The position numbers and the translations under genes were made by a program. A model generated the notes under the pieces. The model saw only the letters and a list, made by a program, of their open reading frames with translations. It was not told where the DNA came from and ran no database searches. Below, piece by piece: positions 1-50,227 of a stretch of 64,000 nt of DNA. Origin of the DNA: Macrostomum hystrix (taxonomy: Eukaryota > Animalia > Platyhelminthes); assembly GCA_950097015.1 (NCBI GenBank), contig CATNEN010000005.1, positions 2,852,001 through 2,916,000 on the forward strand, in the 5' to 3' direction. Within the stretch, counting starts at the first letter, position 1, and each line of letters starts with the position of its first letter.

Positions 1-2640
1 CGATTGATAACTGAACTTTTGATTGCTGAAGTTCGATTGATAGCTGAACTTTTGACTGCTGAAGTTTGATTGATAACTGAACTTTTGACTGCTGAAGTTC
101 GATTGATAGCTGAACTTTTGATTGCTGAAGTTCGATTGATAGCTGAACTTTTGACTGCTGAAGTTTGATTGATAACTGAACTTTTGACTGCTGAAGTTCG
201 ATTGATAGCTGAACTTTTGATTGCTGAAGTTCGATTGATAACTGAACTTTTGATTGCTGAAGTTTGATTGATAACTGAACTTTTGATTGCTGAAGTTTGA
301 TTGATAACTGAACTTTTGATTGCTGAAGTTCGATTGATAGCTGAACTTTTGACTGCTGAAGTTTGATTGATAACTGAACTTTTGACTGCTGAAGTTCGAT
401 TGATAACTGAACTTTTGATTGCTGAAGTTCGATTGATAGCTGAACTTTTGACTGCTGAAGTTTGATTGATAACTGAACTTTTGATTGCTGAAGTTCGATT
501 GATAACTGAACTTTTGATTGCTGAAGTTCGATTGATAGCTGAACTTTTGACTGCTGAAGTTCGATTGATAACTGAACTTTTGACTGCTGAAGTTTGATTG
601 ATAACTGAACTTTTGACTGCTGAAGTTTGATTGATAACTGAACTTTTGATTGCTGAAGTTCGATTGATAACTGAACTTTTGATTGCTGAAGTTCGATTGA
701 TAGCTGAACTTTTGACTGCTGAAGTTTGATTGATAACTGAACTTTTGATTGCTGAAGTTCGATTGATAGCTGAACTTTTGACTGCTGAAGTTTGATTGAT
801 AACTGAACTTTTGATTGCTGAAGTTCGATTGATAACTGAACTTTTGATTGCTGAAGTTCGATTGATAACTGAACTTTTGATTGCTGAAGTTCGATTGATA
901 ACTGAACTTTTGATTGCTGAAGTTCGATTGATAGCTGAACTTTTGACTGCTGAAGTTCGATTGATAACTGAACTTTTGATTGCTGAAGTTCGATTGATAA
1001 CTGAACTTTTGATTGCTGAAGTTCGATTGATAACTGAACTTTTGATTGCTGAAGTTCGATTGATAGCTGAACTTTTGACTGCTGAAGTTTGATTGATAAC
1101 TGAACTTTTGACTGCTGAAGTTCGATTGATAGCTGAACTTTTGATTGCTGAAGTTCGATTGATAGCTGAACTTTTGACTGCTGAAGTTTGATTGATAACT
1201 GAACTTTTGACTGCTGAAGTTCGATTGATAGCTGAACTTTTGATTGCTGAAGTTCGATTGATAACTGAACTTTTGATTGCTGAAGTTTGATTGATAACTG
1301 AACTTTTGATTGCTGAAGTTTGATTGATAACTGAACTTTTGATTGCTGAAGTTCGATTGATAGCTGAACTTTTGATTGCTGAAGTTTGAATGATAGCTGA
1401 ACTTTTGATTGCTGAAGTTCGATTGATAACTGAACTTTTGATTGCTGAAGTTCGATTGATAACTGAACTTTTGACTGCTGAAGTTATATTGATAGCTGAA
1501 CTTTTGATTGCTGAAGTTCTATTGATAGCTGAACTTTTGACTGCTGAAGTTCGATTGATAACTGAACTTTTGACTGCTGAAGTTTGATTGATAACTGAAC
1601 TTTTGACTGCTGAAGTTTGATTGATAACTGAACTTTTGACTGCTGAAGTTCGATTGATAGCTGAACTTTTGACTGCTGAAGTTTGATTGATAACTTTGAA
1701 CTTTTGATTGCTGAAGTTTGATTGATAACTGAACTTTTGACTGCTGAAGTTTGATTGATAACTGAACTTTTGACTGCTGAAGTTTGATTGATAACTGAAC
1801 TTTTGATTGCTGAAGTTTGATTGATAACTGAACTTTTGACTGCTGAAGTTTGATTGATAACTGAACTTTTGACTGCTGAAGTTTGATTGATAACTGAACT
1901 TTTGATTGCTGAAGTTCGATTGATAGCTGAACTTTTGACTGCTGAAGTTCGATTGATAACTGAACTTTTGATTGCTGAAGTTCGATTGATAGCTGAACTT
2001 TTGATTGCTGAAGTTCGATTGATAACTGAACTTTTGATTGCTGAAGTTCGATTGATAACTGAACTTTTGATTGCTGAAGTTCGATTGATAACTGAACTTT
2101 TGATTGCTGAAGTTCGATTGATAACTGAACTTTTGATTGCTGAAGTTCGATTGATAGCTGAACTTTTGACTGCTGAAGTTTGATTGATAACTGAACTTTT
2201 GATTGCTGAAGTTCGATTGATAACTGAACTTTTGATTGCTGAAGTTCGATTGATAACTGAACTTTTGATTGCTGAAGTTCGATTGATAGCTGAACTTTTG
2301 ACTGCTGAAGTTTGATTGATAACTGAACTTTTGATTGCTGAAGTTCGATTGATAGCTAAACTTTTGATTGCTGAAGTTCGATTGATAACTGGACTTTTGA
2401 CTGCTGAAGTTTGATTGATAACTGAACTTTTGATTGCTGAAGTTCGATTGATAACTGAACTTTTGATTGCTGAAGTTCGATTGATAACTGAACTTTTGAC
2501 TGCTGAAGTTCGATTGATAACTGAACTTTTGATTGCTGAAGTTCGATTGATAACTGAACTTTTGACTGCTGAAGTTCGATTGATAACTTTGAACTTTGAA
2601 CTTTTTGAACTTTAAACTTTGATTTCTGAAGTTTGATTGA
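1..2640. repeat. 33-bp tandem repeat array, truncated by the window start
   Basis: Unit GATTGATAACTGAACTTTTGATTGCTGAAGTTC with recurrent variants; a 2-nt insertion near 1695 shifts the phase. Explains the ITELLIAEVRL ORFs. Confidence 0.97.
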
Positions 2641-3930
2641 TTGCTAGGAAGTTTGACAGCTGTGATTTGATTTCTGAAGCTCGAAATCCAAATTTAGACT
2701 GCGTACAGCTTGTTCAGTCCATGGACTGTGTCCCGCCGCAGTCAGTCAGCCAAATTTTATATAACAAAGCTGGCCGTGTAATTTGTGAAAACGAGACACT
2801 GTAAATTATTTTTTTCTTTTAGAAATACGTCAATTGTAATAGTACATTACTGTTTTTATTGGATAAAATTATATTTCTGTGGGCTAAAAAGCAAAAATTG
2901 CAGAGATGAAAGCCATTTTGTATAGTCATATTATGGCCTCTTCGCGTAATTTAAATAATCGTTGCACATTATTGATCCATCCACTCTCACGCTGATCATT
3001 ATATAGTCCATTATTATCATTGGCATCATTTTTTCCATTGTATATTATATATAGTATACTTCACGCCAACACGTATAGAGATGTTTGAACTGCTAAACTA
3101 AACCGATACATGTGATACTGGATACTGGATACTGGATCCCGTTTTATATTCCATCAATGTGTATATAATGCAGCAAAAAGCCAGAGCGTGGTTTTAAACT
3201 GACGTTGATTCGTTCGATTGTACAAATGCTTTAGCGCTTTAACCAAAAGTTTTAGCATTTAATTGTTGTACTTTTTTTTAAATTAATTCATACTCGTATA
3301 TGTAGCTGGATAATAAACAGGCTCTTTATAAAATGCACTATTAATAGCTGTTAATATTATATCGAGCTACCGTTTTTCTCAATACAAGTACATTATCATC
3401 ATAAAAATTTCCTTAATTTTCTACTAATTTTATTCGTTTTTTGGTTAAATACAACGGAATTTATATGTATGCGTTTGTTTATCTCTCGATCCCTATTTTA
3501 CATACTGAGATTTGCATTTATGTATCTGATTTTAGTAGGCATCTACCCAAACTGTTAGCTCTTTAGTTGAAACTGTACTTAGATTGTACTACGCAAACAC
3601 AATTGGGATATAGCTGCAAATAAATATAACTGCGTATTCAGCTAGCTGAGTGTAATAAACGCAGCTGGGCAACTAAACTAGAAAAGATCGCTTTAAAAAA
3701 TCGTAATGCCTTTGCATATTATATATATATACTATATGCTACGAGTACCCAATATTTATTATCATTGTTCCTTCCTGAATTGTGACTTAATTTATCTATA
3801 GCAGTGTGAATCGATCATGTAGCGAGAGCAGATATTATAAGTATACTCAGCCTTGTTGTCCTTGTGAGTGAGTTATTTTATTTTATTTATTTATTTATTT
3901 CATTTATTATTTTATTATTTTCATTTTTTC

Positions 3931-4263
3931 TGTTGTGGGTTTCGTTACGATAATTCCGTAAATAGTTTTCCAGAACTTTCTACCACTTGTTATAACACTC
4001 TGTTGTTTCCAGAATCTTCTCTGCGCCTCCCCCGCGGGCTATCTATGAGAACTTTCTAGAAAGTTCTCCCACTCGCTCCCCAGGCTATAAATAGAAACCC
4101 CCGCGCGGTGCACACACTCAAGAACCTTTCCAGTATTTAATAATACTGCTGTTACAAATATACGCTTATCCAGTCGACTGCCGAGTGCTCCTTTCGGCGC
4201 TATACTTACATTTACCGACACTACAATTGGAATCTCTGTATTCGTTACTTCAAGAATACAACA
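3931..4263 (+). repeat. 5' LTR (333 bp)
   Basis: Direct repeat of 8664-8997; by eye it differs only at CTCAAGAACC versus CTCAAAAAACC. Confidence 0.96.
3967..4093 (+). promoter_or_regulatory. LTR promoter: three heat-shock elements plus TATA box
   Basis: Inverted nGAAn pentamers at 3967-3981 (tTTCc aGAAc tTTCt), 4006-4020 (tTTCc aGAAt cTTCt) and 4048-4067 (aGAAc tTTCt aGAAa gTTCt); TATAAATA at 4086-4093. Confidence 0.8.
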
Positions 4264-4362
4264 GGGATTTTCTGGCGTCGCAAGCAGGATCTTGATCAAC
4301 TTCGAGGACGTCTAATCTACAACGACTGTCACTATTGACCGAAGGATCAAGCTACTACAATC

Positions 4363-7300
4363 ATGCCCGAAACGATGCAAGACGAGGATATAATCAGCCT
4401 CCTACGGCAGCAGATGGAAGAAGAGCGCCAACAGCGGAACGCTGACCGGCAGATGATGCTCGACCTCATTCGGTCTCTAAAGCCTGCAGCGGACCAGTCC
4501 CAGGCTGCAGCTTTGCCGACGCATGTGACGACGTCGACTCCGAGTTTCTCGCCATTCGACGCCACGTCCGAGCTCTGGCCCGACTACTTGGCCAGATTCT
4601 GCACCTTCACGGGCGCGAACTCCATACCCGACGACAAGAAGGCTCAGGTGTTCCTGACGAACCAGTCTCCGTCTGTCTACAAGCTTCTCTCAAACTTGGC
4701 AGCGCAGCAGACGCCGCGGAAGGAGATCAACACGCTCACTATGGACGAGATTGAGAAGTTCATGGAAGAACAGTATGACACCAAGCGCTTCATCGTGCGG
4801 GAGCGTTTCCGGTTCTGGAGCGACATGCGGCGGAAACCGGGTGAGACGATCCAGGAACTGGCTGCGAGAATCCGCCAGGACGCAACCACCTGCGATTTCT
4901 CTTCCATCAAAGATCCACTGGACGAGGCGCTGCGCACGCGTTTCATCTGCTCAGTGAGGAACGAAGCAGTACACAAAGCTTTGTTCAAATTAAAGGTGGA
5001 AGAGCTCACGTTCGCCCGGGCTGTCGAGATCGCCATCGAGACAGAGGAAGCCGCCCGAGTCGCCAAGGAGACGGTTTACGGCGACAAATCCAGCCCCGTT
5101 AACAAGGTTAAGCAGAAGGTTCGGCGACCCGGAGCCACTTCGGCGAAATTTACGACAGATTCTACTGCTTCCAGGTCTACTACTGACTCTGCGTCTGGTT
5201 CGTGCTACCGCTGCGGAGCGAAGAACCATCGGGCAAACGATTGCCGATTCAAAGACGCGACCTGCCGGCACTGCAAAAAGGTGGGTCACCTAGAACCCGT
5301 CTGCCGTTCCAACGCCAAAGGATCTGCCCCTGCGGCGAACTTCAAGAAGCCAGTGAAACAGGTCGAGGAGCATGTGCTTGTACGTGCTGTAGCCCAAACC
5401 GAGGACGACCTGCCTAAGCTGGAAGTGTCGATCCACATCCAAGGCAAGGCTCTCGCCATCGAGGTCGACACTGCGACAAACGGCAACTTCATCACAGAGT
5501 CATTCTGGAAGAAGCTGGGGACGCCGCCGCTCGAAGTAGCGATGTCACGCTACGAGTCCGCCAGCCGACACGACTTACCTGTACTAGGTACCTTCGTCGG
5601 GAAAACGACATTGCCTGGCTCAGCTCCTGAGCACGACATCCAGTACATCGTCACACAGGTGCCCGGCTTGAATCTACTCGGCCGGACCGCCACGAAGCTG
5701 TTGGGAATCTCCGTCGACAAACTGCTCGGCGCTGCCAGCGCCATTCAAGAAGTCAACGCAGTGTTTGACCACCTGCCGCCGGACGAGGCTCTTCAAAAGG
5801 CCTGCCGAAATCTTTGCGACGAATTCCCGGACCTGTGGAAGGACGAGCTGGGTTGCCTCAAGGACTTCAAGCTCGAGTTGCAGTTTAACCCGGATGCAAA
5901 GCCGGTGTTCCGGAAGGCTAGGCCTGTCCCCTTCGCCATCCGCGAGGAGCTCGAGCGCGCCTACGACGAGGGCATCAGGAGAGGCATCTGGGAGCCTACT
6001 GACTTCAATGACTACGGGACGCCCGTGGTCCCCGTGCGAAAGCCCTCGACCGGCTCAGAGCAGCCGAAACTGCGAGTCTGCGGAGACTACTCGTGCACTA
6101 TCAACCCGCAGCTGGAAGACAACCGTCACCCGCTGCCCCTCCCAGAGGAACTGCTACAGAAGCTGGGAGGCAGCTACTGCTTCTCAAAGGTAGATCTGGC
6201 CGACGCCTACAACCAGATCGAGTTGGGACCGATGAGTCAGAGGCGCCTGGCACTGAGCACCCACCGGGGTGTGCTTCTTCAGAAGCGGCTCGCTTTCGGC
6301 CCGAAGTCTGCAGTGGGTGAGTTCCAGTTCATCATGGAAATGGTAGCCGGTGATCTGCCCGGAGTCGTTTTCTACTTGGACGACTACCTGGTCGGCGGCG
6401 CGACCGCTGATGAGCATCTCGCAAACCTACGCCGGTTTTTCCAACGCCTTTCTGACAAGGGACTTCGCTGCCGACGGGAGAAGTGCAAATTCGCCATGCC
6501 CAGCATCGAGTACCTTGGCTATGTACTGTCGAAAGAAGGCATCGCCAAGGGAACCAAGGTGGACGCTGTCCGCGAAATGCCTCCACCAAAGGACGTGTCC
6601 AGCCTCCGGTCATTCCTCGGCTCGGTCCAGTTCTACGCAAAGTTTCTGCCGCCAAGCATGGCCACGATCTCTGAGCCGCTGTACCGACTCACCAGGAAGG
6701 ACGCACCATGGACATGGGGCGACGCGGAGCAGCGGGCCTTCGAACAGATCAAGGAGGAGCTCTCGTCGGACAACGTGCTGGTCCACTACAATGCCGACCT
6801 CCCTCTCGGGCTCTCCTGCGACGCATCCAACGTCGGGATCGGCGCCGTCCTGTTCCACCGCTACCCGGATGGTAGCGAGCGGCCGATCGCCAACGCTTCA
6901 AAGTCTCTGACGGATGCTCAGCGCCGCTATCCTCAGATTCAGAAGGAAGCCCTTTCAATCATCTTCGGCCTAAAGAAGTTTTTCCAATACTTGTTCAACC
7001 GCAAGTTCATCCTGGTCACGGACCATAAGCCGTTGATTTCTCTATTCGGGCCCGAGAAGGAGACACCAGTAATGGCGGCAAACCGGCTGGCACGGTGGGC
7101 TAACCTGCTCCACAACTTCACCTACGAAGTCGAGTACCGCCAGACCAAGAGTCACGGAAACGCGGATGCCCTGAGTCGCCTGCCAATGGGAGACGACCCA
7201 GATTTCGACGGGGAGGAGAGCGCAGCCGACTTCGACACGGTCTGCGCGATCAAGGTCCTAAGCTTGCAAATCCAGCCGGCTGACGCCTCAGCCGTGGCCA

Positions 7301-8625
7301 AAGAATCATCGAGGGACCCGGTGATCTCCACCGTCATGCGCTACTGTCGAGAAGGATGGCCACCAGACAGGCGAGACGAAGACGCCGAGGTGGCCCGCTT
7401 ACGGAAGGTCAAAGATTCGCTCTCCTGCTGCAACGGATGTCTTCTGCATGGCTGTCGTCTTGTGATTCCTCGGAACCTCCGGAATGAGGTGCTGAAAATC
7501 CTCCACCTCGGACACTTTGGAATACAGAGGATGAAGCAGCTGGCTCGATCGGCAGTCTACTGGCCGAACATCGACGACGACGTCGAGCACCTGTGCCACG
7601 GCTGCCACAGCTGTGCTGAGCACCAAAATCATCCGCCAAAGGCCGCCGTTCATCCGTGGATGATGCCTGAGAAGCCTTGGAGTCGCCTACATCTGGATCA
7701 CGCAGTCAACTTCCTCGGCACCAACTGGCTAGTGCTCACGGACGCCTACTCGAAGTACCCGTGCATACACCCGACGCAATCCATGTCAACGCGGGCAACG
7801 ATCGAGCTTCTGGAAGAAGACTTTGCCCACTTCGGCTACCCTCACGCCATCGTCACTGACAATGCAGCGGCATTCATGGCTGAGGAGTTTCAAGCTTGGT
7901 GTCGCGAACACGGCATCGCGCACCTCACAGGAGCTCCGTATCATCCTGCAACAAACGGAGCGGCCGAACGACTGGTTCAGACCTTCAAGAAGGCCCTGAA
8001 GAAATCCAGCCTGCCACCTGCCAGGGCGCTACAGCAGTTCCTGATGCAGTACCGACGGACTCCTGCGGTCAACGGCTACTCTCCGAGCGAACTCCTAAAT
8101 GGCCGGCAGATCAGGACGCAGATTGATACTCTGCTGCCATCTCCAGCCCATCTCGCCCAGGATCGCCAAGTCAAGCAGGCCGAAGAGTCCAGAGCTCGGA
8201 AAAAGGTGTCTCGCGTCCGAGAAGGCTACAACGTCGGAGATCCGGTCTACGCTCGCTACTACGGACCACGCCGCGAGAAGGAAGGCCGCTGGGTTCCGGC
8301 AGTGGTCACCAAGCGGCACGGCAGCCGCAGCGTCAAAGTCAAGGTTGTCCCAAGCGGCCCGGTGTGGCGACGGCACTTCGACCAGCTTCAACCGCGACAC
8401 GTGTCCGCGGAAGACAGCGAGCCAGGATCACTGCCGACTCAACAAAACGAAACGGCCGGCCACCTGATGCTGCCGGCCACACCAGCGGTGGCACATCCAG
8501 GATCTCGACCCAGGCCTCCAGGATGGCGAGCGCCGGACCAAGTCCAACACCCGCCGCCCTACGGACCAGATAATCCACGACGGTCGGCTAGGCAGCGAAA
8601 GCCACGGCTACAAATGGACTTATAG
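4363..8625 (+). CDS. Gag-Pol polyprotein, 1420 aa (Gag with two CCHC knuckles, aspartic protease, RT, RNase H, integrase)
   Basis: CYRCGAKNHRANDC and CRHCKKVGHLEPVC knuckles; protease EVDTA; RT FSKVDLADAYNQ and YLDD; RNase H CDASNVGIGAVL; integrase HLGH..CHSC zinc finger and DDE core (HLDHA, TDNA, NGAAERLV). Confidence 0.97.
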   Translation: MPETMQDEDIISLLRQQMEEERQQRNADRQMMLDLIRSLKPAADQSQAAALPTHVTTSTPSFSPFDATSELWPDYLARFCTFTGANSIPDDKKAQVFLTNQSPSVYKLLSNLAAQQTPRKEINTLTMDEIEKFMEEQYDTKRFIVRERFRFWSDMRRKPGETIQELAARIRQDATTCDFSSIKDPLDEALRTRFICSVRNEAVHKALFKLKVEELTFARAVEIAIETEEAARVAKETVYGDKSSPVNKVKQKVRRPGATSAKFTTDSTASRSTTDSASGSCYRCGAKNHRANDCRFKDATCRHCKKVGHLEPVCRSNAKGSAPAANFKKPVKQVEEHVLVRAVAQTEDDLPKLEVSIHIQGKALAIEVDTATNGNFITESFWKKLGTPPLEVAMSRYESASRHDLPVLGTFVGKTTLPGSAPEHDIQYIVTQVPGLNLLGRTATKLLGISVDKLLGAASAIQEVNAVFDHLPPDEALQKACRNLCDEFPDLWKDELGCLKDFKLELQFNPDAKPVFRKARPVPFAIREELERAYDEGIRRGIWEPTDFNDYGTPVVPVRKPSTGSEQPKLRVCGDYSCTINPQLEDNRHPLPLPEELLQKLGGSYCFSKVDLADAYNQIELGPMSQRRLALSTHRGVLLQKRLAFGPKSAVGEFQFIMEMVAGDLPGVVFYLDDYLVGGATADEHLANLRRFFQRLSDKGLRCRREKCKFAMPSIEYLGYVLSKEGIAKGTKVDAVREMPPPKDVSSLRSFLGSVQFYAKFLPPSMATISEPLYRLTRKDAPWTWGDAEQRAFEQIKEELSSDNVLVHYNADLPLGLSCDASNVGIGAVLFHRYPDGSERPIANASKSLTDAQRRYPQIQKEALSIIFGLKKFFQYLFNRKFILVTDHKPLISLFGPEKETPVMAANRLARWANLLHNFTYEVEYRQTKSHGNADALSRLPMGDDPDFDGEESAADFDTVCAIKVLSLQIQPADASAVAKESSRDPVISTVMRYCREGWPPDRRDEDAEVARLRKVKDSLSCCNGCLLHGCRLVIPRNLRNEVLKILHLGHFGIQRMKQLARSAVYWPNIDDDVEHLCHGCHSCAEHQNHPPKAAVHPWMMPEKPWSRLHLDHAVNFLGTNWLVLTDAYSKYPCIHPTQSMSTRATIELLEEDFAHFGYPHAIVTDNAAAFMAEEFQAWCREHGIAHLTGAPYHPATNGAAERLVQTFKKALKKSSLPPARALQQFLMQYRRTPAVNGYSPSELLNGRQIRTQIDTLLPSPAHLAQDRQVKQAEESRARKKVSRVREGYNVGDPVYARYYGPRREKEGRWVPAVVTKRHGSRSVKVKVVPSGPVWRRHFDQLQPRHVSAEDSEPGSLPTQQNETAGHLMLPATPAVAHPGSRPRPPGWRAPDQVQHPPPYGPDNPRRSARQRKPRLQMDL

Positions 8626-8663
8626 ACTTTCTATCAGCTGTACTCACAGTTTTGGTGGGGAGG

Positions 8664-8997
8664 TGTTGTGGGTTTCGTTACGATAATTCCGTAAATAGTT
8701 TTCCAGAACTTTCTACCACTTGTTATAACACTCTGTTGTTTCCAGAATCTTCTCTGCGCCTCCCCCGCGGGCTATCTATGAGAACTTTCTAGAAAGTTCT
8801 CCCACTCGCTCCCCAGGCTATAAATAGAAACCCCCGCGCGGTGCACACACTCAAAAAACCTTTCCAGTATTTAATAATACTGCTGTTACAAATATACGCT
8901 TATCCAGTCGACTGCCGAGTGCTCCTTTCGGCGCTATACTTACATTTACCGACACTACAATTGGAATCTCTGTATTCGTTACTTCAAGAATACAACA
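8664..8997 (+). repeat. 3' LTR (334 bp)
   Basis: Direct repeat of 3931-4263, preceded by the PPT and followed by the TSD. Confidence 0.96.
8700..8826 (+). promoter_or_regulatory. 3' LTR copy of the HSE cluster and TATA box
   Basis: Same motifs at 8700-8714, 8739-8753 and 8781-8800; TATAAATA at 8819-8826. Confidence 0.78.
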
Positions 8998-11900
8998 TTT
9001 TCATTATGAAATATTTCATTATTTCATTTATTTACGAGCGTATTTACTTCATATATTTTTCTATTGCTAGTTGTTTTATTTTACAATCAGCGAGTAAAAA
9101 CCTATGATTAATTAGAATCACGGTGCTCACGGGATGCCAATGCCAGATACTTGGTTTGTACTGCATTATGCTTATCGAAAGCAATACCTAAATTAAAAGC
9201 AAAAGTTCATATTTTAAGCAAAATTATAAGCAAAAGATCGATATTCACTAAATCACGTTTATCACGAATGCGTTTATTCAGGGTATGCGGAATTTCAAAT
9301 TTGGCACTTGTGCCAATTTATTTAATTTTATTGTACAAATTTTAGTACAAAGAACAAATTAACAATATTGTCAATATATGATGCGCGGTTTTCAGAAGAT
9401 ATTGCAGGCCGAAAAGCAGCCCAATGATTCAGCGTAATTAGTATTGGGTACGAGCAGGTTAACTAGGACAAACTTAATACATACTTTTATATAATCATTG
9501 AATTGGCAGGACGTTGTTGTCACTGCCGCACTGGCACATCATTTGGTGACAGCTGCCGGTTTTTCATTTGCCAGCCATCCAACGCTGCCAGCCAGTGAAA
9601 AGAAAATCTTGCCCATTCCGATTACTCTCGCACACAGATAACGTCCGCACAAAGGTGTACGTCTATCATGACTGTCTTATCGCCTGGCAGTGGCTGAAGT
9701 GTAGGCCCCTACACTTTACTATACCTTGAAGCTTGGAGGTCGGCCCTTCTACTGAGTCAAGGGTAAAAGTGTAAATCGCACTATAAACCCCATCAACCTC
9801 TCTGTGGCTGCGCCCCAATCACTGTTGTCATGCCACAAAATCAAACTCAAAGATTTTGAGCAAGAGCTGAGAGGAGAGGTTAACTCACCCCCTCTGATGA
9901 CTGTGCTCTGTCATCAAAACATTTGCTTCGTTTTATCTTTAAAAATTGGTCATAGCATTTAATTTTGTTATTGGGTCTAGTAGGCCCTATGTGACTTCTT
10001 CATATGGGTGTAGCCTGTGTAGGCTTATTTCTCTAGGAGTCTAGGCTAGGCCCTACTAGGCCTATTATATTAGCTAAGCCAAGGCTAGGCCTAATAATTT
10101 TTTTATTTTTACTTAGTACCTGGGTACATAGGCCAATTACAAGGCACTATGCCCTGTCTATGTTTCTATGATGCTATTATAGTTAAAGTATGGGCCTTAG
10201 CTAGGCCTTTATTCTTTCAGTAAATAAATAAGTAGATGTATTTTTTCTTGCATGTGGTTCTAGGCCTATGATTACAATTGAACATTGAACAGAGAATAGG
10301 CCCAGGCCAGCCTATGGCAATAGCAATATATTTAGAAAAAGATATATTTCTAATTTTAATTTAGCAGTCTAACAAAGTATATAGTGCTACTTGCCTACTT
10401 ACAGTTTAAACATAATATATGTGACATCAAGAAAGATGTATAAAACTAGGGCTAGGCTTAGCTTCTAATAATGATTTATAAACTCTAAATGGTTTCTTGA
10501 AATGTAGGCCTATTATCATCTAAAAGCAATATAGGAAAAAGTTTCCAATCTGTAGAGAGCTTCTGGCAAGCTTTTTGGATTTTTCTATGGCATAGACCTA
10601 GTACAAGTTTTTCTTACTTAACTGTTACTTGAAAAGATGACTTAAGCAGCCAGCAGAAAGAGGCATGGCTAAAGTGCACCTTTTTCAATCCTTATTAATT
10701 CTAAAGCACGCGTCCATAGGTTTTCAACATTTATTCCAATAGGGTCTAAAAGCTATGCCCCAATTTTACTTTAACATTTTTGGAAACCAGGCCTAATGGA
10801 AGATAGGCCCTAGATTTATAGATAGTCCAAAAATTTGATTTTAGTTTTTCTAAATTCAAACTTTTTTGGTAAAATTATAGTTTTAAAAAAATTATTTTTA
10901 TATAAAGTAAAACAAAAACATTAGTAATAAAAAGCTTTGTAATATATAGGCAAACATCTATGATATTAGTATATATATACTTCTAGGCCCTTTATTCTTA
11001 AGGTTTCAAGCATAATTCTTTACTAGAGCTCTTAATAAACAGGTTTAAAATTATAAGCCTTTATCACTAATGGCTTAGTATTAGTGGTAAGACCTTAAAA
11101 TAGACATATTTATGCTCACTAATGTAGAGAATAAAAAGCTAATTAACTAAACCATAGCATAGAGTTTTATAGTAGTTTGTCACAAGAGAGTGAGACATTA
11201 AGGTATATCCTATCCAAAATTATTTTATCATTCTCAAATTCCCAACTAAAACAACACAAAGGTGTAATGCATAGAAAATAAATATTTTTTAATATAATAT
11301 ATTTAAAAGAGCCCACATAAAAGTAAGAAACCACCATTGCTGAAATTTTTAGATAGCAAAATCCATATGCTTTGGACTTTATATAGCAAGTGTCATGAAT
11401 TTGTCTACTTTGTCTTAGATGAGATAAAAAAGTGCTTTTGTATAACACTCTTGGATTACTCAGATTATATGTATACCTTGTCTTAATCTAGTATAAATAA
11501 TTGCATAATTAAATAATATATGGATTGCATAATTGTATAGATCAAAGTTAAGATTTGAAAGAAACAACTATTTGTAACAGGGCTTATGACTCTACTTTTC
11601 TACCTCTTAGTGGCATATTCTTCTGGCCTCTTTTGTTCCTTATTTCTCCCTCTAACTCTTTGTATTCTCCCTTATACTTTATCTTGGTGACCCTGAAAAG
11701 GGCCGTTTTAACTCCACAACTCTTACGTTGTGGGTTTCCCTTAAGATAGTGCTTTTGCACTGGCACAAGCGGTTTATCCTTCTAAGGCACTGGTCTCTTA
11801 TTCTCCTGTGTTAGCTGGGCGTTTCTCCAGGATTAGAGGTTCACAGCCTCAATCTGTCTTATTTCCACTCTGGACACTTATCTCCTTAGTATATTAAATA

Positions 11901-47546: not shown

Positions 47547-50227
47547 GGGATCGGATCTATTTTTAGCACTGAGTCAGAAACCGAAAACAACGTAAGGAAC
47601 ACGTTGGGGAGGCCCAGATTTGCAGCAGCAAATGAGACACAACACAGTCGCCCGATGTGGGGGTGGGGGCATGGGCGAATCCGCGAGGAAAGGAAAGTTC
47701 TAGAATTTTGTCTCCTAATTTTAGCTCAAATTCGTCAGTTGCTATTTTTAGCATACGGGCTCGCCGTGGCGCCGGTCCCAAGTAGCTGTGGCAAGCCACC
47801 ACACGCGGGTTGGAGGGGGTGGGCGCCGGCTTGTTTCTCTCCTGCCCTGCCCTGCTCAGTTCATCAGGTTCACTTTGGTCACGCGGAGGATGGTGAGAAA
47901 GACATTAGAGAAGGGTGAGGGACGAGGGTAAGTCCTGCTTGGCGCGCTCGATTAGCGAAGTACGCAGCGTCATTCAAATTCACTACTGAGAGAAAAAGGA
48001 ACTTCGTTCCCAGGGATAACTGCGCTGAATTTAATATTTAGAAAAAAACCAAGGGAGTTTATTATCTTAGTTTTTCTGAATTCTGTCTACATCATTTAAA
48101 ACCAAAACTACGATTCTCTCTTTAAAACAGATAAAGTTTAACCTGTTCTGCTTAAAATCTTAGATGATATAATATATTTACAGGCGGACCAATAAATATA
48201 ATCAATAATATAAATTATTTTGAACATCTAAAATCGAACATGTAAACAAAAATATAAATAGCCTAAACTCAGATCCAATTTTCCCTCACGTATTGACTGT
48301 TGTAATTGCGTTCCGACCGGCCCTCTCCAAAGTCCAGCCGCTCGACTTCCATTGCTTTCCTAGTTTTTTTGTCAGCTGATAGTAGGGGATCAGTGTACAC
48401 ATGTAGGTACACTGCAATTTCCGATACTGTTTATAAAAATGTGAGTTCAAGAATTGTTATTGCTTTTTATTTGCCGTATTAGTATTCAAAATCTATTAAA
48501 CATCAAATATGCAGGCTTGCGTTACGGTTCCACTGATTTCGAACAGTATGATTTCATTTGCGAAACTGGTTCCTCATTAAACTGAACTTGACAAAGCGTT
48601 AACGTGTATAGTTCCATGTTGTCCACCCCTAAAAGGGGTTGGGTAAATCTTACGAAATTTGTTTCAAGGTCAATCGTAATGCGAACGTTTCTCTGCCACG
48701 TCCTCTTCTCCCTCTTACCCCCTCAAGTGACAAATGTACGTAATAGTAAGCAATCCTCGCGTACATTCTATTTTTAGAACAAGCACTGACTGCCCTCCAG
48801 ACAGATTGGAATTTGGCCTGCACATGAAAACAGAACTTGGTCTAGCTAGCGTGTTGTTCACGTTGGCACAATGCGTCATTCCTGTCCATTGATCCTGCAT
48901 TTCGTCGAGTAAGTCGACGGAAATTTCCTAGAATAACATTCGTTTTTTAAAGCAACTGCAACTATTCTACTGCCCTGAGTAGACGTTTGATTACAGAGCA
49001 ACTCGTTTGTCAATTTTTAAGTTGGCCTAGCACTTTATTGTTTCCGACATTAGAACTTAGCCAATTCTAATCAATGCTTAGCTTTCCTAATTGGCAGAAC
49101 TTTTCAGAGGAAATAAAACTCCCACATACTGCCAAATTTCTATGCGAATCTAAATTGCGAATAACAGCCTATATTACACCCGAAAAACAGAGCCTAGCAC
49201 TGCCGAAGAGACACGCAATCATGTCACACAGCTAGATTCGTCATGCAAAATAACCCGGGGTATGCAAGTGTAAACATATTTTCAAAGCATGGAAACAAGT
49301 GTATTACTGAATTTTATAGTTTATTGTTTTCCAATTCGCATGTGTGGTCGTTATGAATGATTTGGTATTATGAAAGTTGGGTTTCTAACCATGTGTTTAA
49401 TCTGAGTGGTTTATTAGAATTGTTAATCATTTAACACATCTTATTACCCTTGGCATTCTTTAGCACCGGTCATTACCAATTTACTTTATTTATGGTATTT
49501 TATTGCTATTGTACTTTAATAAAGCACAGGTAAATAACACCGTTATTACAGGGAAACAATTTTAACGCAGAACAATGAAGCTGACAGAAAAAGGCACAAC
49601 AGTCGTGAAAATGTCTAGTGTTTGCTTTACAACTCTGAGAAAAATGCCCACATTTCTACTTTAAGTAGCAGGAGCGACTTTTTGTATTCTCTTTAACCGA
49701 ATCTTTTCATACTATTAAGTATGAGAAAAAGCCCTGAAAACCAATAAACTGACAGATGACAAATAAGATTTGATTAGATGAAAACGCTTAAGACAACATA
49801 ATTACAAAACAAGTAAATTTAAATTGAGAAACAGAGCTTTTTTGTTTATCTATTTTAAATAGCAGAAGAATACTTTTTAAACACTTGTTTGTGCACTTGT
49901 CACGAAACAAAAAAGAAATATTTAAAATATAAAGAAACGGAGAACAAGTTTTTATTACAATTACAACTATGATAAGATTGGTAAGTATTGGTAAGCGAAA
50001 ATTACAAATGCAGAAGATTGTAAAGCTTTAAATAACGAAAAACCGGTTAAATGTAAAGTTCAGGGACGAGATCTGACTTCAGGTCAACTGAATGACCTAA
50101 TCAGACAAATACTTGTAATTGCCTGACCAACGGCCCAACTAGTTGGCCTTTTAGATAGACCCTATAATTGGTAAATTAAGAAACAACTTTAACTGTTCTA
50201 TCAAACATATTTTTAGGATGACTTCTC

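Follow-up and report, generated by a model that had tools for sequence, protein, structure and literature searches.

We conclude, with a probability of roughly 85%, that the long terminal repeat (LTR) examined here is a heat-shock promoter that recruits the host heat-shock factor (HSF) and belongs to a recently active Ty3/Gypsy retrotransposon of Macrostomum hystrix. The element lies in a window of 64,000 nucleotides, by which we mean the whole stretch of DNA that was analysed. That HSF would drive its transcription, as the original prediction proposed, is strongly though indirectly supported by the HSF genes of the host, by a promoter syntax that is also that of the host hsp70 genes, by the conservation of the heat-shock elements (HSEs) between diverged subfamilies and by an experiment done in Macrostomum lignano, and the reading of the LTR as a heat-shock promoter is drawn from these same four lines. 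The stretch would be the U3 promoter of the element: heat or proteotoxic stress would recruit host HSF trimers to the three HSEs, and this recruitment would start transcription in the 5' LTR and give full-length gag-pol RNA, in the way that host hsp70 genes are switched on. We infer HSF binding, heat induction in M. hystrix and increased transposition as parts of this scheme. This mechanism has been published before, for the congener M. lignano. New are the species and some details, namely that the LTR matches the 3-3-4 syntax of hsp70, that unit numbers turn over between subfamilies, that the primer site is complementary to tRNA-Ser, and that HSE-bearing LTRs occur in relatives from other phyla.

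HSEs were scored as perfect alternating runs of GAA and TTC at 5-bp spacing with at least three units. Direct reading and this motif scan both bore out that the LTR has three perfect HSEs of 3, 3, and 4 units and that the last of them is held in a 22-bp perfect palindrome ahead of a TATA box (Table 1). The original prediction had placed the HSEs in the 100 bp or so before the TATA box; this layout stood but the extent had to be corrected, as 119 bp separate the start of the first HSE from the TATA box and the module spans about 120 bp. The HSE starts are 39 and 42 bp apart and the gap from the HSE3 core to the TATA box is 19 nt. All three HSEs match the nTTCnaGAAnnTTC form. In the 3' LTR the HSEs are at 8701-8713, 8740-8752, and 8782-8799 and the TATA box is at 8819-8826, and in both LTRs the three perfect HSEs, of the canonical form nGAAnnTTCnnGAAn or its complement, precede the TATA box. 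At least three contiguous units stand close to a TATA box and the host has HSF genes, as is expected of an hsp70-type HSF target promoter. When the LTR was shuffled 20,000 times with its dinucleotides preserved, the mean number of elements of at least three units was 0.003 and no shuffled LTR had two or more elements; the origin of the LTR HSEs by chance is therefore excluded. The scan of the 4.4-kb element interior gave zero perfect elements. The 59 kb outside the element had one, a perfect 3-unit HSE gGAAagTTCtaGAAt at 47693-47705 that is situated in GC-rich DNA and near which a TATA box was not obvious.

Table 1. Positions of the features of the retrotransposon (window coordinates) and of HSE-bearing LTRs of foreign relatives (coordinates of the respective loci)
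Feature	Position	Strand	Remarks
5' target-site duplication TTTTC	3926..3930	+	same 5 bases directly 3' of 3' LTR
5' LTR, 333 bp, TGTTG...CAACA	3931..4263	+	BLAST against window
HSE1, 3 perfect inverted nGAAn units tTTCcaGAActTTCt	3967..3981, core 3968-3980	.	motif scan
HSE2, 3 perfect units tTTCcaGAAtcTTCt	4006..4020, core 4007-4019	.	motif scan
HSE3, 4 perfect units, in 22-bp perfect palindrome GAGAACTTTCTAGAAAGTTCTC	4047..4068, core 4049-4066	.	motif scan
TATA box TATAAATA	4086..4093	+	17 nt after HSE3 palindrome
Hairpin-forming U5 block, GCCGA-9 nt-TCGGC	4180..4198	+	kept in diverged LTRs L053 and L057
Primer-binding site, 18 nt	4273..4290	+	complementary to host tRNA-Ser 3' end + CCA
Single gag-pol ORF, 1,420 aa	4363..8625	+	ORF and Pfam
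Polypurine tract GGTGGGGAGG	8654..8663	+	adjoins 3' LTR
3' LTR, 334 bp	8664..8997	+	three HSEs and TATA box; BLAST
3' target-site duplication TTTTC	8998..9002	+	
L090 LTR	2071-2480		HSEs of 4, 3, 3 units, then TATATATA
L163 LTR	778-1150		two HSEs and half-sites, then ATATATATATA
L160/L161, Corticium candelabrum GCA_963422355.1	1236-1474		identical 239-bp LTRs, 4-unit HSE, half-site, TATATAAA
L162	1284-1467		related element with HSE just upstream of TATA-like box

The element occupies 3931-8997 of the window and is 5,067 bp long. By BLAST against the window its two LTRs (333 versus 334 bp) are 99.4% identical and differ at two places, one being a substitution and the other a single-base indel. 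This LTR pair, the TTTTC duplication, the primer site, and the 1,420-aa frame confirmed the earlier call of an intact Ty3/Gypsy element. Direct LTRs ending in TG...CA with a short target duplication, and a tRNA primer site together with a polypurine tract, are as expected of Ty3/Gypsy (Metaviridae). The gag-pol product matched the Pfam domains RVT_1 (residues 596-721), RT_RNaseH (785-919), Integrase_H2C2 (1035-1089), and rve (1123-1195) and also RT_RNaseH_2, so that the order is reverse transcriptase (RT), RNase H, and integrase. The integrase thus lies downstream of RT as in Gypsy elements and not upstream of it as in ONSEN and other Ty1/copia elements. No Pfam protease domain gave an above-threshold match in gag-pol, and the gag part shows CCHC-type cysteines in the protein alignment. 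Most likely the element belongs to the Mag clade of Ty3/Gypsy, to judge from its single gag-pol frame and from the three-HSE family of M. lignano, which has been placed in Mag.

The primer-binding site begins ten bases past the 5' LTR and its reverse complement is ...ATCCTGCTTGCGACG+CCA. Host tRNA-Ser genes were located using a search pattern without CCA, and ARAGORN identified the host loci with the 3' end GGTTCGAATCCTGCTTGCGACG as tRNA-Ser(AGA/CGA). Three loci with one mismatch to the primer site were rejected as the source of the tRNA because ARAGORN found no tRNA in them; one of the three, L150 (G000:C1:13731050-13731380), is the primer site of a different LTR family. In that other family the primer-binding site is directly past the LTR end and more than 30 nt of it are complementary to the same tRNA-Ser, reaching through the T arm. 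At the other end of the element under study the polypurine tract precedes the 3' LTR in 12/12 copies checked, and this is also the case in foreign relatives. The U5 block is retained as CTGCCGAGTGC...TCGGCG in the diverged LTRs of L053 and L057, and TACAAATA(T/C)ACGC, which is upstream of this hairpin block, is likewise conserved across the diverged subfamily LTRs. Positions 1-2597 of the window are made up of a 33-bp satellite (78.6 copies, 94% match) that extends past the window start; some 1.3 kb further downstream, in AT-rich DNA, the retrotransposon begins.

The genome that was searched comprises 220,453,370 bases in 42 contigs; Wiberg et al. 2023 (PMC10468722) give about 220 Mb and 42 contigs for the M. 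hystrix assembly. At least 40 matches to the LTR were found at 98-100% identity. The 22-bp palindrome is present at exactly 50 genomic sites compared to 0 for the reversed-pattern control, and these 50 sites correspond to about 21 pairs that are 4.73 kb apart and about 8 unpaired LTRs. There are thus about 21 full-length copies, and the LTRs of these are identical or near-identical: the 12 LTR pairs examined have 0-2 differences each and 7 of them are identical. All 12 full-length copies examined are flanked by 5-bp duplications, each by its own, and in at least 12 copies a frame of about 1,428 codons runs without interruption; other copies are truncated or carry single stop codons. The near-identical LTR pairs, the separate duplications, and the intact frames indicate that the family transposed very recently. 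In a motif scan of family copies, which had been suggested as a check, the three HSEs and the TATA box were found in all 30 LTR copies fetched, and only in one of these did HSE3 have 3 units and not 4. The near-identity of copies inside this main subfamily is uninformative on selection and only a comparison between subfamilies is informative. The copies L015/L016 on contig C31 and L017/L027 on contig C16 are one insertion on two contigs with identical flanks GTTATGGGTAAC / GTAACTATATTG, which probably represents an uncollapsed haplotype or a duplicated region of the assembly.

At least four host loci with an HSF DNA-binding domain were found. On contig C33 there are four intronless hsp70 genes, two of which form a divergent pair, and the promoters of all four have perfect HSEs of 3, 3, and 4 units with TATAAA 14 nt past the proximal 4-unit HSE. 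The hsp70 regions are L065 (G000:C33:3869650-3871500), L066, and L067, and they comprise the divergent pair with mirror-image promoters and two further copies; a copy of the retrotransposon is situated at C33:3896578-3901643, about 25 kb from the divergent pair. The LTR and the host hsp70 promoters have in common the 3-3-4 order of units and multiple perfect sites for HSF trimers, and in both of them, as well as in classical Drosophila hsp70 promoters, the proximal HSE is 14-19 nt upstream of the TATA box. They differ in that the module of the LTR is tighter, the HSE starts in the hsp70 promoters being 66-104 bp apart compared to 39 and 42 bp in the LTR, and in that there is no sequence homology past the motif words. 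When the LTR was compared by BLAST with three regions covering all four hsp70 genes, only HSE words of 9-16 nt were common to them, and capture of the LTR promoter from hsp70 was rejected on this ground. With no BLAST similarity past these words, the LTR appears to be an imitation of the host promoter and not a captured copy of it.

The same genome contains diverged subfamilies of the element, L053 with a pol that is 95% identical and L057/L059 with a pol that is 89-91% identical, and the LTRs of these are heavily diverged. Nevertheless L053 and L057/L059 keep three perfect HSEs followed about 20 nt downstream by a TATA-type box, which in L057 is identical to TATAAATA. The numbers of units per HSE are now 4-3-3 and 5-3-3, and HSE1 and HSE2 are conserved at homologous positions in L053 and L057. 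In the pairwise comparisons with L053 and L057 the HSE cores were 83% and 93% identical, respectively, whereas the remaining U3 was only 57% and 56% identical (Fisher's test, p = 0.011 and 5e-5, respectively). In four loci of other Gypsy families in the genome (43-45% pol identity) the scan gave no perfect HSE, which rules out that Gypsy LTRs of this genome have perfect HSEs as a rule. It is extremely improbable that the motifs are non-functional, or that they are bound by some other factor that recognises TTCnnGAA-like palindromes, because chance is excluded, the cores have stayed similar where the sequence around them has diverged, the syntax of host hsp70 is identical, and mutation of the HSEs abolishes the heat response in M. 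lignano (PMC12801592). We also consider it very improbable that the HSEs were captured from a host heat-shock promoter through recombination or read-through instead of having evolved de novo. The 3-3-4 unit pattern and the TATA box that are common to the LTR and hsp70 would fit a capture, but the matching sequence is confined to the 9-16-nt words while spacers, flanks, and spacing differ, the subfamilies have other unit patterns, and foreign relatives whose U3 cannot be aligned carry HSEs as well.

In M. lignano canonical HSEs have been reported in 6 of 137 LTR-retrotransposon families (Ustyantsev et al. 2025, Mob DNA 17:3, PMC12801592), a study that was preceded by a preprint of December 2024 and in which there is no mention of M. 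hystrix. According to its reference 16, Biryukov et al. 2020, as it is cited there, the HSE motifs of M. lignano were first spotted in silico. The strongest induction after 2 h at 37 °C was that of Mlig-id115, the only Mag family among them, with 19 copies and three HSEs, which was induced more than 250-fold; the four induced families together had a log2FC of 8.0 ± 1.3 and by qPCR the induction occurred within 5-15 min (PMC12801592). A reporter in which the Mlig-id115 LTR drives mScarlet responded to heat in embryos and in adults, and when all the elements ('nTTCnaGAAnnTTCc') were mutated the heat response was abolished (PMC12801592). What was measured in that study is transcription and, as its authors say, HSF binding and transposition were not demonstrated (PMC12801592). 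Two Copia families with a single HSE were not induced (PMC12801592), which suggests that the presence of an HSE alone is no guarantee of a heat response. The element in the window and Mlig-id115 are alike in host genus, superfamily, and copy number (19 versus about 21 full-length copies here) and in an LTR with three canonical nTTCnaGAAnnTTC-type HSEs followed by a TATA box, and the single gag-pol frame of the window element is consistent with the Mag clade. The two differ in host species, M. lignano versus M. hystrix, and they were compared by published description only.

The original prediction saw in this LTR an ONSEN-like strategy in an invertebrate. The convergence stands, as it was stated explicitly by the authors of the M. 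lignano study, but the novelty that was implied does not, because the same had already been concluded for M. lignano in 2025 (PMC12801592). ONSEN (ATCOPIA78), a Ty1/copia element of Arabidopsis, also has HSEs in its LTR and its transcription depends on the host heat-shock factor; it differs in being a plant element with the copia domain order, and the window element is therefore ONSEN-like in its mode and not a member of that family. For ONSEN the binding of HSFA2 and transposition triggered by heat have been demonstrated. Helitron1_CE of Caenorhabditis elegans is likewise a transposon that carries HSEs and spreads them through the genome, but it is a rolling-circle DNA transposon and not an LTR retrotransposon. 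Steamer and the Steamer-like Mag-lineage elements of bivalves resemble the window element in their length of about 5 kb, their single gag-pol frame, and their occurrence in aquatic invertebrates, this comparison being by description and not by sequence. PMC8905726 cites work on Steamer expression under thermal stress.

Sequencing runs were searched for words of the element in the form of assembled contigs only, which have no power to show a start site or induction, and none of the runs that hold such words is on record as RNA. Four runs with one organism label (X3-X6), each with about 50 Mb of contigs and of transcriptome size, held 64-73% of the element words, and their element contigs were mostly at least 99% identical. 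In X3 and X4 there are contigs that lead from the 3' interior through one LTR to the 5' interior; this pattern fits the collapse of two identical LTRs and fits a 1-LTR circle or a tandem pair alike, and it is therefore uninformative. A DNA-like run with a different species label (X7) held element contigs that were 96.6-98.9% identical (1.1-3.4% diverged), whereas seventeen 'RNA?' runs sharing that label (X8-X24) held almost none of the element words. The contrast between X7 and X8-X24 could reflect baseline silence, a recent transfer between species, or contamination.

These runs bear on two other ways of looking at the LTR. One is that the HSEs are real but the family is silenced in M. hystrix, epigenetically or by piRNAs, with the promoter being relevant in particular cells or stages only; heat would then cause hardly any induction in the living worm and no burst of transposition. 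The near absence of element words from the seventeen runs would agree with this, as would the observations that the M. lignano reporter appeared absent from the gonads and that the two HSE-bearing Copia families of that species did not respond (PMC12801592). We nevertheless regard silencing as unlikely, because the LTRs of the roughly 21 full-length copies are identical or nearly so, which points to very recent transposition, and absence from the X8-X24 contigs is no proof that the family is silenced. The other is that the LTR is used by HSF chiefly outside stress, in an embryonic, stem-cell, or germline programme, and that the heat response is a by-product and not what selection acted on. It is known in general that HSF has developmental targets in animals, and the element words in X3-X6 could come from baseline transcripts, although these runs are not on record as RNA. 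The LTR reporter of M. lignano could be activated in embryos, but heat was required for this (PMC12801592), and the LTR has the architecture of the hsp70 genes that are inducible and intronless. A mainly non-stress use of the promoter is thus quite unlikely, and activation under stress is the reading that we retain.

The LTR family of the window is not the only carrier of strong HSEs in this genome. The 4-unit pattern GAANNTTCNNGAANNTTC has 163 genomic sites compared to 24 for the reversed control; 50 of the 163 are within the LTR family of the window element, and among the first 50 sites listed 38 are in three repeat families. One such carrier is a second Gypsy family, unrelated to the first (L153, G000:C1:11587800-11594000, element at 1042-5051), that is 4.0 kb long with a polyprotein that is 28% identical to that of the window element. 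Its two 257-bp LTRs are 99.6% identical, and in each of them a stretch of 65 bp has three perfect HSEs of 3, 4, and 3 units. The 1,151-aa ORF of this family contains RT, RNase H, and an integrase zinc finger; the domain search of this ORF gave no match to the integrase core. Another is a repeat of about 1.7 kb, present in multiple copies, that has a perfect HSE of 5 units (L154 1230-1252 and L155 983-1005, G000:C1:8279000-8281500 and C1:19420000-19422000, respectively). L154 and L155 are 98% identical, short tandem repeats lie on either side, and there is no ORF longer than about 120 aa. This repeat makes up about 15 of the first 50 listed 4-unit sites. The presence of several HSE-bearing families in M. 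hystrix parallels the several independent families of M. lignano (PMC12801592).

The pol of the element is 65-70% identical to that of elements annotated in a snail (Batillaria), in sponges (Corticium, Ephydatia), and in a tunicate (Phallusia), and it is 81% identical to that of the nearest foreign relative, L068, which is on a metagenome contig. In the foreign survey LTRs were delimited in 18 distinct clusters with 50-81% pol identity. At least one perfect HSE was present in 9 of these 18 clusters, compared to about 0.005 expected per LTR (binomial p about 1e-16), and in 7 of the 9 the HSE is directly upstream of a TATA-like box (see Table 1 for examples). Imperfect HSEs were enriched only in the same LTRs, in which 2-7 were found compared to 0.05-0.13 expected. 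The LTR pairs of L160/L161, L162, L163, and L090 are identical or near-identical. In a FastTree tree of pol the HSE-bearing LTRs are scattered through the whole sub-lineage, and the U3 regions of distant relatives appear too diverged for alignment. The scan of the L068 LTR gave no perfect HSE and, with the nearest relative lacking it, the trait is patchy among the relatives. We put forward tentatively that a heat-shock-type U3 may not be peculiar to Macrostomum but may mark the whole 'K02A2.6-like' Gypsy sub-lineage across aquatic invertebrates, as a trait either gained repeatedly or ancestral, a generalisation about which we are somewhat more doubtful than confident. All eukaryotes have HSF and its binding site, and an HSF promoter would therefore work in any new host. 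If this is true, a promoter that is independent of the host could help to explain the distribution of the sub-lineage across phyla. The near-identical element in X7 could result from a recent transfer between flatworm species and could equally result from cross-contamination in the laboratory.

The strategy of hijacking the heat-shock response, which has been shown experimentally in M. lignano, would on the evidence of these sequences extend to a second species of Macrostomum. In M. hystrix the family is of very recent origin and has multiple copies, most of them intact, and its LTR follows the syntax of the hsp70 promoter. This family together with at least two further repeat families supplies most of the strongest HSEs listed for the genome. 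If confirmed, the pattern among the relatives would link stress-inducibility to a promoter function that is independent of the host and to horizontal spread. M. hystrix, with its compact and contiguous assembly, would be a good system in which to study whether heat raises transposition and whether transposons rewire the heat-shock regulon.
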